A stretch of 64,000 bases of DNA. Origin: Guillardia theta CCMP2712 (lineage: Eukaryota; Protista; Cryptophyta). Each line of letters opens with the position of its first letter. Position 1 is the stretch's first letter. Positions 29,689 through 43,545 of the stretch are shown in pieces. A program made the position numbers and the translations under genes. The stretch covers positions 277,581 through 341,580 of the forward strand of contig NW_005434643.1 in NCBI RefSeq assembly GCF_000315625.1. Reading direction: 5' to 3'. A model generated the notes under the pieces. That model ran no database searches, was not told the origin of the DNA, and was given only the letters and a program-made list of their open reading frames with translations.

Positions 29689-30169
29689 GCCGCCGTCGCT
29701 GTTTCCTTCCGCCACACCCAAATGGGGGTCCTTGAATCGAGCAGATCGGGGTGGGCATACTACCCCCCACCACTCTGCTACCATACAATCAGGGATATGG
29801 AGTTTTACCTAGGAAGACATATATAGAATCTGTGCTCAATAAGGTATGTGAAATAAAGATATCCCACCCCAATGTTGAAAGAATGGGTGGGGTAGTGGGT
29901 AGGGTAGTCACAGGGCTCCCGCCCTCTTTCCAAGAAAGGAAGGTGCCCGACGGGCGAACCGGCGCCGGCGGCGCAAAACAGTAGGCTGTCACAACTGACT
30001 CAGTAGTTATGCGGCGAAGTCGTCACCTAGCCTACTAAAAGAGAGATTCTTTACTCAAAGTGAAGTTAAAAATCAGTACGAGGACAATAATGAGAGTCAA
30101 GGAGGCTTGACCCTGACTAATAGTGGCACTGACTCTGTGAGTAGCCGCAAAGGCTAGTGAGCCTGAGTG

Positions 30170-38865: not shown

Positions 38866-40370
38866 GCCAGGAAACCGGAAAAGTTGAGAATGTGAAGATG
38901 CGAAACGGGAAGATAAACAATGCAAGCAGATGCTTCGCAACTTCCCTGCCACTCCCCACCCAAGACTCCAAAGGAGTGGAAGGAGTGAGGAGTGGTGGTT
39001 GGTGACCGCGCGAGCTGTCGGGTGAGCTGATCAAGTACAGTAGATAGCTGACGGGTTACTGGAAGTTGACTCTCAGAAGACTGTAGAAGGAAGAGAGAGG
39101 AGGAGAGAAGATGAACGGCGAGGAGCAGGTGGTGGAGGAGGAGGAGCAGGGTCCTACGGGAGCCGGAGGCGACAGATGGGGGCAGGGGATGTGTAAATAG
39201 AATTGTGGGCTTAAAGTAAGACTGAAATGCTATATTTCTCTTAAAACAATTATTTGTACCAACATGTACAATAGAAAAACTCTTATAGTGAAATACTGAA
39301 TTTAAGGCCACAAGAAACGACCGCTCGCATGAGATAAGTCTAGATTACCACAGAGCTCTGTACCGGGATTTATAGCATTAAAACATTTATGTGTATAAGT
39401 ATTTTTGGGGGGTTGCAGTACACATGGCCTCGTCATCAGACCCTCATAATATATCGAATAATATATTTTTCGTATATCTTAAAATAGTTATTTGTTATCT
39501 CGGTACGATCTGGATGTACGGCCCCGACTGATCTCGTCTCGGTACCGCCATAAAATGGTATATCTGGAACTACCCACCCAGGACATCATGAGAATGGGAG
39601 GGGTACTTGCCTCCTCTGCAACCTCTCGGCCTTTTTTAGCAACCTGTTTACATCGACCACCCACCTCATTTGATCTTCTTCATGACCCCCACCCTATCCA
39701 ACCCTGTCTTTCACCCACCCTTGATAGGTTCTATCGCAACCTCACTTTCTCGTCCTTCTACCCCCACCCCCAAGAATCCCCCCGCTTGTATCCTCATTGT
39801 GAGTGAAACTGTCACAACCGTTGTCTGGCATGAACAGGCCCGCCCCAGAATAAACACAATTCCCGGGCCCGGAGCCCGAGGTGCCGAAACACTGAGACTT
39901 ACCGGGTGAGGAGTCTGAAGGCCCATCGAACATTCCGAGGTCCCTGCCCACGTCATACTCCCCAACCCTACCCATGTTTTGAAGATGTCACTCCATTGAC
40001 CGGTACTTCCCAGATAGCAAAGTTCTGTCAATAACGGGTTCATTGGTACCCCACCCCCTCGTGTGGAGCTTTCTTCAGGCTCATACAGCACGCCAATGCA
40101 CCTCATTACAACAACTTCAGACTACCCACCCATATTGTTTCACTACCCTACCCCCTTTGGGCTACGAAAGCAAAGAAACCCATTTCTTGGCAGCATTGGA
40201 ATCTCGTTCATTCATAGAAAACTTTTATCAACTAAGATGAGTCAAACTTAAGTAACTGTTGTTGAATAATGCACTACCCCACCCAAAACAAGGACCCTAC
40301 GTTTTTCACCACCCTACCCACCCTGAGGGCACATGGACGACCGATCGCACTGAGCTAGAGTATCGTCGCC

Positions 40371-43072
40371 ATGCAGTGGAGGACGAGGGTGGCAGCGCTG
40401 GTTCTTTGTGCCGCTGTGATGGTGACAGGGGAAAAGCAAGAGAAGTTGCGGTGGGCACAAGACAAGGAAAGACTTTATGTCACCATCGCTGTTGAATGCG
40501 CAAGTGACAGGAGCGTGGGTCACACCGAAGATCGATTCTTGTTCTCCTGCAAGGGGAGTGATGGGAACTTACATAAGACAGACTTTGAGTTGAGAGAACC
40601 GATCAAACCGTCGGCCAGTCACTGCAAGCAACAAAGAGGAGAAGAAGTCTGCATGTGAGCATCTTGCCAACTACCCCTCTTTGCATCGCCTTCGAACATT
40701 GAATCTTGTTCAGCCCCCTCCCTATATTCTCCTCTCTTCTCCTCGACATCCCTCTCTCTCCATACACTTAGACGTGGATGTCGCAAGCATTGCTGATACT
40801 TGTAATGACAGACTACAAAAAGCGCACCCTCACTATTTCGACAAGCTTACAACTGATAAGGAAATCCTGAACATTCTGAAGCCAGATTGGTCGAGGTGGA
40901 AGGATGAAGACGAGGGGTGCGCATGATTGTGTCACCCTCTTGGCTGGCTGATTTTTTCTGTTCTTTGCAATACAGAGGAGCTTTCGAAAACGATTACGAG
41001 GTGTTGCCCAAGTCAATCATGCTCCCGGGGACGGTCGAACTCGTGGACAAGACTGTCAAGGAAGGCAAAGTAGCCTTCGTGCACGCCTACTTGCCCTGGT
41101 GAGGAGGAGGAGGAGGAGGAGGAGGAGGAGGAGGAGAAGGAGGAGGAGGAGGAGGAGGAGGAGGAGGAGGAGGAGGAGATATGTAGGGATCGCTCACATG
41201 GTTGTAGGTGCAATATGTGTGCCTACACCCGGCAAGGCTTCATCCGAGCCGCAAAAGAACTCGGGGGGAACCAGACAAACAACGTCTTCATTTACATTGA
41301 CGCGAGGGAGGACAAGGCGGCGGCAAAGCGCTACAACATCACGTGCGTGCCGGAGTGTTTCTTCGTCATCTCTAGGAATGGCGAGCAAGATGAGGTGATG
41401 GCGGCCAAGGGGAGTAACGACGACATTGCAAATGCGATCAAGGCACATTTGCCCCCAGCGCTCAGCAAGGTGAGCACGGACAGCGAGGTCAATCATTTCA
41501 TCGAGGAGAACGCAGTTTCTGTTCTCGTTGCGGTCAAGGGTGGTCTGATGTCCAAGGCGACCGACTCCAGTGAGTATGTTGCAGCCAAGAAAGCCGCACA
41601 GACCCTGCGGGGGAAGGTGATGTTGGAATCAAGGTGGAGGGGGTCAACTGAATCTGATTTGTCAGGCGAGCTTCATGTACACTGACAAGAAACTCTTGGG
41701 ACTTGCGCCAGGAAACATGCGGGTCTGGGTGAATGGATCAAATCCTCAGACCGCAGCGCTGGGCTCCGATTCCACGGCACTAGCGAAACAAGTCATTGGG
41801 CTGAGCTGGGGTCTAGAGCTCTTCAACTACACCTGGAAGAAAAGAGAAGTGTTCGACAGCGTTGGAATCCCGATCGCCCATGTGTATCCGGGTACCAAGT
41901 CAGAAGATCTTGAGATGTTCAAGGAAGTCGCGAAGGAGCTTAGTGGCAAGATTGCATTCCTCCGCTTCGCGGAATCTGAGAATTACATGCTCAAAGACTT
42001 TGGGCTTGTGGAAGACAAGTTCCCTGCATTTGGAATCGCTGAGAGCTTCGATGCCAAGGCAAAGAGATATGCCTTCGAAGGAGATTCTTTCACCAAGGAA
42101 AAAATCATTGAGTTCTGCAAACGTTTCCTTGATGGGAAGCTTGAGCCCTCTTACAAATCAGAAGTGGTTCCAGGGGGAGAGCATGTTCGTGGGACTGTGC
42201 GGCATGTTGTGTGGAAGACTCTTGCCGAGAGCAAGTGGAATGACATCACTGCAAAAGAAGATGTTCTCCTCCTGCTCTACAAACCTTGGTCCAACGATAA
42301 CCAGAAAGTTCTGACCATATTCGACAAGGTTGCAGCGGCGTTGGAGAAGGTCGAAGGAGTTTCTTTGGGCAAGCTTGACACAAGCAAGAATCACTATGAT
42401 GCCGAACGGTTTCCGATTGATGAGTACAGCAGCGAACCAGCTGTCTTCTTGTGCAAAGCCGGATCGAAGCCGACACAGTTCGCCGGGGCGCTGACTCAGA
42501 AGGATCTCTTCAAGTTCCTTGCCAAGAATTCCCCAGCGGTTAAAGCCGGTTGGGAGACACTTGTGAAACCAAAGCTGCAAGAGATCAAGGCAGCAGAGGA
42601 AGAGAAGAAGAAGAAAGCAGAGGAGGCAGCAGCTGCTGAAAAGGCCAAACTAGAGGAAGAGAGGAAGAAGCTCGACGAGCTGGCGGCCACGGCTGAGAAG
42701 ATCGACGTGGGCTCGAAAAAGGATGGGGGCCTGATCAAGCAGATCATCTCTCCCGGCTCAGGAGACTCAACCCCGCAAAAGGGAGACCTCGTCAAGGCTC
42801 ACTACACTGGAACCCTGCTCGATGGAAGCAAGTTCGACAGCTCACGGGATCGGGGCGATCCCTTCTCTTTCACCATCGGGCAAGGACAAGTAATCGCGTG
42901 TTGGGACGAAGCCTTCCTTACCATGAAGAAAGGAGAGAGAGCTCTTTTGACTTGCACGGCTGAGAATGCCTACGGAGACAGAGGAGCTGGAGAGAAGATT
43001 CCTCCTGGCGCCACCCTCAGGTTTGATGTGGAGCTCATCGACTTTGGCAACAAAGCCAAGTCAGAGTTGTAG
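40371..43072 (+). CDS. ER-luminal multidomain foldase: signal peptide + p23/CS domain + PDI-like thioredoxin domains + FKBP PPIase + KSEL
   Basis: Signal MQWRTRVAALVLCAAVMVTG; p23 motifs LRWAQDKERLYVTI and LKPDWSRWKDEDE; WCNMC across intron 41099-41207; FLDGKLEPSYKSE; FKBP VKAHYTGTLLDGSKFDSSRDRG...IPPGATLRFDVELI; ends KSEL*. Confidence 0.85.
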
Positions 43073-43209
43073 GAAGGATCTCATTGGTGAAGAGAATACA
43101 TGTTGTGTACACGCGTGGCATTCCAACTCAACTACGATCGCGACCATGCTGGAAGAATATACACTCTTTGTTACAACTATACATAGATGATCTACTGTAA
43201 GTAGCTTTT

Positions 43210-43545
43210 TCACATGGACTGATTGTCCCTCGGGGAGAGAAGAAAGCGTCTTCGTCTCTTGACAATGTAGTTAGCAAACGATCCTGGCATAACAGGACGG
43301 GAGGTCGGAAGAACGTGACTTGATTCTGTGTTCATAACGAAATTATGGGAGTGCCTCTTGTATTTGCTGCACCATTGTGGGAGAAACTCGAAGCAACCAT
43401 GATGGTCCTCTTCACCATAACTGATCGCGTCGTGGGATGATAGCAATATCGTGCTGCATTGGCGAGATCCTGCTGCCTGCGTGTGTACAAGGCGTCTCCT
43501 GAATTGCGACACGAATGCTCTGGACAACAGTGTACCTTTGACCAT
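43210..43545 (-). CDS. Small intronless protein of an unnamed PGS[WF]A...RRF family (copy A), mitochondrial-presequence-like N-terminus
   Basis: MVKGTLLSRAFVSQFRRRLVHT...; shares PQWCSKYKRHSH and PVMPGSFANYIVKRRRRF with the ORFs at 52964 and 53522. Confidence 0.7.
   Translation of the reverse strand: MVKGTLLSRAFVSQFRRRLVHTQAAGSRQCSTILLSSHDAISYGEEDHHGCFEFLPQWCSKYKRHSHNFVMNTESSHVLPTSRPVMPGSFANYIVKRRRRFLLSPRDNQSM

Follow-up and report, generated by a model that had tools for sequence, protein, structure and literature searches.

A predicted endoplasmic-reticulum protein of Guillardia theta carries p23-like, PDI-like and FKBP domains in one chain

The window analysed here is a 64,000-nucleotide stretch of the cryptophyte Guillardia theta CCMP2712 (contig NW_005434643.1, positions 277,581 to 341,580, forward strand); all coordinates given without a contig name are counted within it. 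At 40371–43072, on the plus strand, lies a gene whose product has, in this order, a signal peptide, a p23-type CS domain, a PDI-like a-b-b'-a' body, a long helix, an FKBP domain and a C-terminal KSEL. We consider it most probable (about 0.85) that this protein is a soluble multi-domain folding catalyst of the lumen of the endoplasmic reticulum (ER), composed of the domains listed and encoded by a single nuclear gene, a view that draws on its own sequence and on those of its relatives. PDI, FKBP and p23 are each textbook proteins. Every part of the chain belongs to a known family, and the whole is a PDI-family variant, the sequences of which are already public but unnamed. An earlier interpretation, made from the letters of the window (the sequence-only reading), had listed the signal peptide, the CS domain, a WCNMC site, b/b' domains, a Cys-less thioredoxin domain with KPWSNDN, a charged helix, described there as a coiled coil, an FKBP domain and KSEL, and all of these were found again where it had placed them.

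Results

The N-terminal domain

By sequence homology and modelled fold, the N-terminal domain is p23-like specifically, and appears nearer to true p23 than to any other class of CS domain. When a profile of six N-terminal domains of the family was compared with all PDB sequences, five chains were matched, all of them p23 proper, including Arabidopsis At3g03773 (8e-8), human p23/PTGES3 (~1e-6) and yeast Sba1 (5e-5). The alignments began at the first strand and reached as far as the acidic run. Over 1.84 billion representative sequences, the N-terminal profile retrieved two groups, the long fusion family and many proteins of 160–220 amino acids; 17 of the 36 short proteins scanned were Pfam CS proteins resembling canonical p23. 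Aligned with hhalign against 15 canonical p23 sequences, the family gave a probability of 99.5 and an E-value of 3e-23 over 113 columns. A profile of canonical p23, run on the G. theta genome, found a true p23 on contig 1 first (5e-28) and the gene in the window second. In the window it matched exon 1 at 40434–40634 (E 1.7e-10) and exon 2 at 40816–40914 (E 5.9e-4).

The AlphaFold2 model of residues 18–140 of a cryptophyte homologue, P0005, was a beta-sandwich with a mean predicted local distance difference test (pLDDT) score of 86. Its best Foldseek matches were human p23 in Hsp90 complexes, with template-modelling (TM) scores of 0.75/0.81–0.83, a root-mean-square deviation of 2.0 Å and 25% identity. 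Sba1 and Arabidopsis p23 came next, followed by Sgt1, CacyBP, NudC, Shq1 and small heat-shock proteins (HSPs). Seven residues of the domain (W28, Q30, C60, C85, C94, K98 and D105) were invariant in all 18 members compared, and C43 was present in 17 of them. The p23/Sba1-like CS domain proposed from the sequence was thus borne out by the PDB profile, hhalign, the genome profile and Foldseek, though it stays under the Pfam cut-off (see below).

Two other p23-like loci were seen in the genome. The gene for canonical, cytosolic-type p23 is located at 147459–147788 of contig 1 and matches the p23 profile at E 5e-28. On contig 81, at 79123–79476, a third p23-like stretch is broken by two TGA codons, and may be an intron-containing gene or a pseudogene.

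The PDI-like body

The middle region has the abb'a' make-up of PDI, with CxxC at one site only, as judged from profile matches and from the homologue model. Pfam Thioredoxin_6 recognized the b/b' part with 38.3 bits (cut-off 27 bits), and also matched 14 of the 19 homologues. An intron interrupts the a domain, which gave 19.3 bits with Pfam Thioredoxin; the a-domain profile had the catalytic domains of PDIA4 and PDI as best matches (1e-23 and 3e-17, respectively). Its active site reads WCNMC in Guillardia, and the W-C-x-x-C pattern was invariant in all 19 members having this region. At the corresponding site of the a' domain no Cys was found in any of 20 family members. The full-length model of P0005 (pLDDT 85.7) had four thioredoxin-like domains, a helix of 45 residues and an FKBP domain. 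The four domains aligned over 470–500 columns with fungal and human PDI and with the abb'a' part of ERp57 (E ~1e-25). The feature search in the ESM Atlas returned generic PDI clusters only, at 0.82–0.83, which is under the useful score. The unusual WCNMC thioredoxin domain, the PDI b/b' domains and the Cys-less thioredoxin domain of the sequence-only reading can therefore be described together as an abb'a' body with one CxxC.

All homologues carry an invariant Cx3C that flanks the cis-Pro position of the thioredoxin fold, next to the CxxC site. The four cysteines of CxxC and Cx3C lie close together and might make up a second redox pair, a structural disulfide, or a site for a metal or an Fe-S cluster.

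The long helix and the FKBP domain

The FKBP domain looks catalytically intact in its sequence, as had been proposed. Pfam FKBP_C (PF00254) matched with 112.8 bits (E 9.5e-33), and was present in 17 of the 19 homologues. Among solved structures the closest was the FK1 domain of wheat FKBP73, with ~124 bits (E 3e-66 for the whole three-domain chain), followed by the FK1 domains of FKBP52 and FKBP51, with a small margin over FKBP12. The identity to FK1 domains was ~55–65%, and the FKBP part of the P0005 model had Foldseek matches to the FK1 domains of FKBP51 and FKBP52. No FKBP13/FKBP2 entries were found among the 60 best solved matches. The FK506- and peptide-binding positions that we take to be equivalent to Tyr26, Phe36, Asp37, Phe46, Val55, Ile56, Trp59, Tyr82 and Phe99 of FKBP12 are kept in Guillardia and in most members.

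The domain also has a family-invariant Cys pair, C719 and C737. We take C719 to precede the Trp59 equivalent, and C737 to lie in the strand that corresponds to residue 76 of FKBP12. Neither cysteine is known from FKBP12 or the FK1 domains of FKBP51/52, and neither is at a known disulfide position of FKBP13. The pair may form a disulfide in the lumen.

A family in distant protists

The sequence-only reading did not recognise the architecture. It is not a one-off. Full-length relatives of 770–843 amino acids have the same domain order, many of them from transcripts marked complete; the complete orthologues derived from transcripts measure 770–816 amino acids. The closest relative protein is from Hanusia phi (85–87% identity), and the next ones are from Rhodomonas abbreviata and Baffinella frigidus. 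Further members are found in the chlorarachniophyte Gymnochlora, the diplonemids Namystynia and Artemidia, the euglenid Entosiphon, the pelagophyte Chrysophaeum taylorii (CTAYLR_006383, KAJ8599227.1) and the choanoflagellates Salpingoeca rosetta (PTSG_06263, XP_004993152.1, UniProt F2UCE5), S. infusionum and Hartaetosiga. A transcript labelled Hpha is listed with the diplonemids. Overall, the orthologues are 24–85% identical to the Guillardia protein and share the Cys pattern and the xxEL end. They differ from it in the dipeptide of the CxxC site (CNMC in Guillardia, CGHC in Artemidia), and often in the second aromatic residue of the p23 motif, which is gone. The sequences indicate that the architecture is an old and widespread protist family, which spans several supergroups and is conserved together with its xxEL end.

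No animals, fungi or plants were among the named matches, and no rigorous search for absence was made. Word-index searches with residues 1–620 of the S. rosetta protein and with the 19-sequence alignment returned only the queries, which reflects a limit of the index and is uninformative on distribution. The database name of the S. rosetta orthologue is just "peptidylprolyl isomerase", and the family is otherwise unnamed. The architecture is therefore widespread but apparently uncharacterised: we found no paper on it or on the orthologue accessions, most subscription journals being outside the coverage. With the same coverage, no paper describing an ER-lumenal p23-type domain was found.

A subgroup of the family (P0002, P0003, P0004 and P0010), 43–48% identical to the Guillardia protein, has an extra repeat between b' and a' that resembles the P-domain of calreticulin/calnexin (Pfam Calreticulin, 35–38 bits, above the cut-off). 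In these chains it would be a fourth ER-folding module. P0003 is encoded at locus L027, 104–2029.

Points against the assignment

Several observations weigh against a p23-PDI-FKBP foldase as described above. On the exon-1 fragment, Pfam CS (PF04969) reached 17.0 bits, under its cut-off of 21.3 bits, Pfam having been run on in-frame exon pieces of the gene, and it gave no match at E ≤ 0.01 in the 19 full-length homologues. This failure was first taken as a warning against a CS identity, and was overturned by the profile and structure tests; it means that standard annotation is blind to the N-terminal domain. The structure models are those of P0005, which is 40–41% identical to the Guillardia protein, and not of the protein in the window. 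The tests on the window's own letters were Pfam on exon pieces, the FKBP sequence search and the canonical-p23 profile. Unlike p23, the domain has no long acidic or GM-rich tail with a client-binding helix. At the second aromatic position of the p23 motif, just 9 of 18 members have an aromatic residue; the diplonemids, the chlorarachniophyte and the euglenid have lost it. Finally, the cis-Pro position is Pro in Guillardia (CVPEC) and Hanusia (CAPEC), and Pro is absent there in most relatives. The non-conserved cis-Pro, together with the invariant Cx3C, suggests that the redox chemistry of the a domain may be atypical.

What the p23-like domain might do

The following mode of action is proposed for the protein, its enzymatic activities, disulfides, oligomeric state and partners being inferred. 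The one WCxxC site of domain a would carry out thiol-disulfide exchange on newly translocated proteins, while b/b' and the redox-dead a' would hold the unfolded substrate as in PDI. The helix-tethered FKBP would isomerise prolyl bonds of the same substrate, so that the disulfide and prolyl steps, the two slow steps of oxidative folding, would be coupled in one chain. The p23-like domain would be a module with a chaperone or co-chaperone role, and its four conserved cysteines, which probably form two disulfides, would adapt it to the oxidising lumen. For this module two roles can be weighed.

The first is a role independent of Hsp90, to which we give roughly even odds: the CS domain would be a passive beta-sandwich holdase, or a substrate-binding or oligomerisation domain, that was added to a PDI-FKBP foldase. 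Proteins with CS or alpha-crystallin folds often work without Hsp90, and the Foldseek list continues beyond the p23 proteins to Shq1, NudC and small HSPs. The most invariant residues (W28, Q30, the four cysteines, K98 and D105) are core or structural residues and not part of the motif, which is degenerate in many lineages. Against this stands the closer similarity of the domain to true p23 than to other CS classes. In addition, the residue equivalent to F121 of Sba1 is Trp in 16 of 18 members and is followed by an acidic run, which upkeep of the fold alone would hardly explain. As a description of what the domain does in the lumen, a holdase or interaction domain without Hsp90 stands at about one chance in two.

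The second role, a GRP94 co-chaperone, is plausible from the sequence, though we would not favour it. Here the protein would be a dedicated general co-chaperone of GRP94, the ER-type Hsp90: its lumenal p23-like domain would bind the ATP-closed dimer and bring PDI and FKBP to the clients. The protein would then correspond, in the ER and as one covalent chain, to the cytosolic Hsp90-p23-FKBP51/52 maturation complex. GRP94 is without the MEEVD used for docking of TPR domains, and we infer that the covalent linkage could replace this docking. In p23, the core is directly followed by two aromatic residues (F121/W124 in Sba1, F103/W106 in human p23) that bind a hydrophobic patch on the middle domain of Hsp90; binding is driven by the first, and the ATPase is slowed by the second (PMC7864943).

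In the Guillardia protein, the motif DW121-S-R-W124-KDEDE aligns with F121/W124 of Sba1. Its letters, DWSRWKDEDE, are identical to the consensus of canonical protist p23 at the Hsp90-binding site (DW-x-x-WKDEDEE) over DW-x-x-W-K-D-E-D-E, that is, at the Hsp90-binding residues, and the motif is retained in the cryptophyte members. The homology is also p23-specific, and not that of a generic CS domain. An Hsp90 of the ER type is encoded in the same genome; it has a hydrophobic leader and a charged linker, and ends in KEEL. Among solved structures, the FKBP domain is most like the FK1 domains of the Hsp90-associated FKBP73, FKBP52 and FKBP51, if by a small margin over FKBP12. General co-chaperones of GRP94 had not been identified, according to a 2024 PNAS paper on Grp94 (PMC10962938).

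On the other side, half of the family (the diplonemids, the chlorarachniophyte and the euglenid) has lost the second aromatic, the tail helix of p23 is absent, and mammalian GRP94 is not known to use p23. A complex prediction, for which the input was the G. theta GRP94 N-domain (two copies), the first part of its M-domain (two copies), ATP and the CS domain of P0005, scored 0.02. This gave no verdict, because the design was weak (chain fragments, a cross-species pair, no alignments), and counts neither for nor against. On balance, a dedicated GRP94 co-chaperone seems unlikely, with somewhat better than one chance in four. Docking of the p23-like domain on closed GRP94 through the retained DW-x-x-W-acidic motif is a tentative proposal based on the motif, and only slightly less doubtful.

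The GRP94-type gene, with its leader, charged linker and KEEL end, is located on contig C113 (87431–89273); the linker is on a mini-exon. About 3 kb upstream of it, on the opposite strand, there is a second Hsp90-like fragment (C113, 84265–84603), and the open reading frames flanking the two loci are near-identical. The pair reflects an inverted partial duplication or else an artefact of the assembly.

ER signals

The leader can be read directly from the sequence: a positive start, the hydrophobic stretch VAALVLCAAVMV, and then VTG|E. The CS domain begins ~4 residues past the putative cleavage site, without a transit-peptide-like extension. All family members examined had a hydrophobic N-terminal leader, and 16 of the 17 homologues with a complete C-terminus had an xxEL end, the observed termini being KSEL, KTEL, KAEL, KEEL, REEL, QDEL, SDEL, RDEL, KDEL and others. 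The KDEL-like KSEL of the Guillardia protein is therefore one form of an ending kept across the family. Cys pairs are conserved in each of the CS, a and FKBP domains; they would fit an oxidising compartment, where they may form disulfides.

In cryptophytes the plastid is enclosed by the ER, and plastid proteins likewise begin with a signal peptide, so the protein might be sent on to the periplastid compartment or the plastid, or be secreted. We regard this as very improbable: the leader is not followed by anything like a transit peptide, the KSEL/xxEL terminus is conserved, and the family is present in choanoflagellates and diplonemids, which have no plastids. On these three grounds plastid or periplastid targeting was rejected.

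Gene structure and transcript

The locus is one gene with one mRNA. Five exons join into one open reading frame of 2328 nt (775 amino acids) with no internal stop, and the four introns (157, 59, 109 and 49 nt) all have GT..AG borders (Table 1). We aligned four public runs to 40150–43400. In three of them, from three studies, there was a single spliced contig per run (2388, 2387 and 2383 nt), with starts at 40352, 40355 and 40364 and ends at 43113 or 43115. All four introns were removed at the junctions of the gene model, no letters mismatched and the depth was uniform. The junction 41098|41208 sits in a masked (GAG)n repeat, and was visible only as contig pieces jumping from 41092 to 41207. 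A 2026 RNA-seq run added raw reads at the 3' end of the gene, on the expected strand. The public runs containing the gene stretch carried ~0.78–0.79 of the sampled words, consistent with an intron-free mRNA. The RNA label of the runs is a guess and the contigs are assemblies, but contigs free of introns are cDNA, whatever the label.

The short GT-AG introns had been proposed to join the pieces into one gene, and the contigs span the whole reading frame; two or three separate genes are excluded by them. An artefact of gene prediction, in which neighbouring p23-like, PDI and FKBP genes were read as one, has a negligible chance, nothing being left in its favour beyond the caution about labels and assemblies, while the contigs of three studies (uninterrupted frame, four introns gone, even depth) rule out separate genes and the same full-length architecture recurs in transcriptomes and genomes of distant lineages.

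Table 1 Features of the gene and its predicted product in the window.
Feature	Position	Strand	Description
mRNA	40352..43115	+	5' untranslated region ~19 nt, 3' untranslated region ~41 nt before any poly(A); spliced contigs from 3 studies
Exon 1	40371..40654	+	ATG, predicted signal peptide of aa 1–20 (40371–40430), part of the CS domain up to aa 94
Intron 1	40655..40811	+	157 nt, GT..AG; joint 40654->40812 in 3 runs
Exon 2	40812..40916	+	End of the CS domain, aa 95–129, with FDKL and DWSRWKDEDE; p23 profile match 40816–40914
Intron 2	40917..40975	+	59 nt, GT..AG; joint 40916|40976 in 3 runs
Exon 3	40976..41098	+	Linker, then thioredoxin domain a as far as the Trp codon of WCNMC, which intron 3 splits
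Intron 3	41099..41207	+	109 nt, GT..AG; (GAG)26 microsatellite at 41101–41178
Exon 4	41208..41616	+	Predicted catalytic a domain (CNMC 41209–41220, CVPEC 41344–41358), first half of domain b
Intron 4	41617..41665	+	49 nt, GT..AG; joint 41616|41666 in 3 runs
Exon 5	41666..43072	+	Rest of b, b', a', helix, FKBP, KSEL, TAG stop
Rest of b, and b'	41666..42139	+	Non-catalytic thioredoxin-like, ~aa 308–465; Pfam Thioredoxin_6, superposition of the homologue model
a' domain	42197..42538	+	Thioredoxin fold without Cys, KPWSNDN in place of WCxxC, ~aa 485–598; Pfam Thioredoxin 30.0 bits
Long helix	42542..42700	+	Charged, Lys/Glu/Ala-rich, ~aa 600–652; read from the sequence, single 45-residue helix in the homologue model
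FKBP domain	42764..43039	+	FKBP-type peptidyl-prolyl isomerase domain, aa 674–765; Pfam FKBP_C, Cys pair C719 and C737
C-terminus	43058..43072	+	KSEL (ER-retrieval type) and TAG; read from the translation

The microsatellite of intron 3 has 97% matches to its repeat unit and fills nearly all of the intron, which splits the Trp codon of WCNMC. Four copies of the motif CTACCC[CT]ACCC were found in the 64-kb window, against 0.03 expected. Two of them (40143–40153 and 40274–40284, +) lie 90–230 nt upstream of the ATG in the gene's own orientation, and the other two are in tandem at 29885–29907 (−). The motif may be a promoter element.

Discussion

The N-terminal domain could be a true lumenal p23, and then the first general, conformation-sensing co-chaperone of GRP94, one that delivers PDI and peptidyl-prolyl isomerase to clients; we consider this doubtful, at about one chance in four. 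If it were true, the spread over Cryptista, Rhizaria, Stramenopila, Euglenozoa and choanoflagellates would make an ER machine of Hsp90, p23 and immunophilin ancient. Whichever role applies, the family is a testable handle on whether the ER Hsp90 has a p23-like regulator, and on how cells couple disulfide and prolyl isomerisation. Salpingoeca rosetta and diplonemids are genetically tractable, and with orthologues in both, the question is open to bench work. The family also exposes a gap in annotation, Pfam CS having missed the domain in all 19 homologues tested.

Comparison with known systems

With p23/Sba1/PTGES3 the N-terminal domain shares the fold, the sequence homology, the WAQ start and the [FW]-D/P-[RK]-L motif. 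In Guillardia it also has DW-x-x-W ahead of an acidic run; this DW-x-x-W aligns with the Hsp90-binding F-x-x-W, the second aromatic of which is kept in about half of the family. Unlike these proteins, it stands behind a predicted signal peptide in a protein with an xxEL end, and has four conserved cysteines. Whereas cytosolic and nuclear p23 stand alone, here a short acidic linker of ~15 residues connects the domain to a thioredoxin domain.

Compared with PDI/P4HB, Pdi1 and ERp57/PDIA3, the protein is alike in its signal peptide, a-b-b'-a' order, WCxxC in the a domain and KDEL-type end. It differs from classical PDI and ERp57 in that a' is without CxxC in all members, and in this it is closer to PDI-family members with inactive domains. 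The Cx3C around the cis-Pro loop and the unconserved Pro set it apart from the PDI family, as do the p23-like domain added at the N-terminus and the helix and FKBP domain added at the C-terminus.

The FKBP domain resembles the FK1 domains of FKBP51/52 of animals and FKBP62/73 of plants in being a canonical FKBP_C domain with conserved catalytic positions. Unlike those proteins, the chain has no TPR domain, and its FKBP is tethered to the PDI body by a long helix and has a Cys pair of its own. With the ER proteins FKBP13/FKBP2 and FKBP65 it has in common that it is predicted to work in the ER lumen.

The nearest analogue in design is ERdj5 (DNAJC10), which appeared among the Foldseek matches of the P0005 model through its thioredoxin domains. 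Both join a co-chaperone module for an ATP-dependent chaperone to PDI-type domains in the ER lumen. The module of ERdj5 is a J domain recruiting the Hsp70 BiP, whereas in the Guillardia protein it is of the Hsp90 co-chaperone type and is accompanied by a peptidyl-prolyl isomerase; the likeness is one of analogy, the added domains not being homologous.

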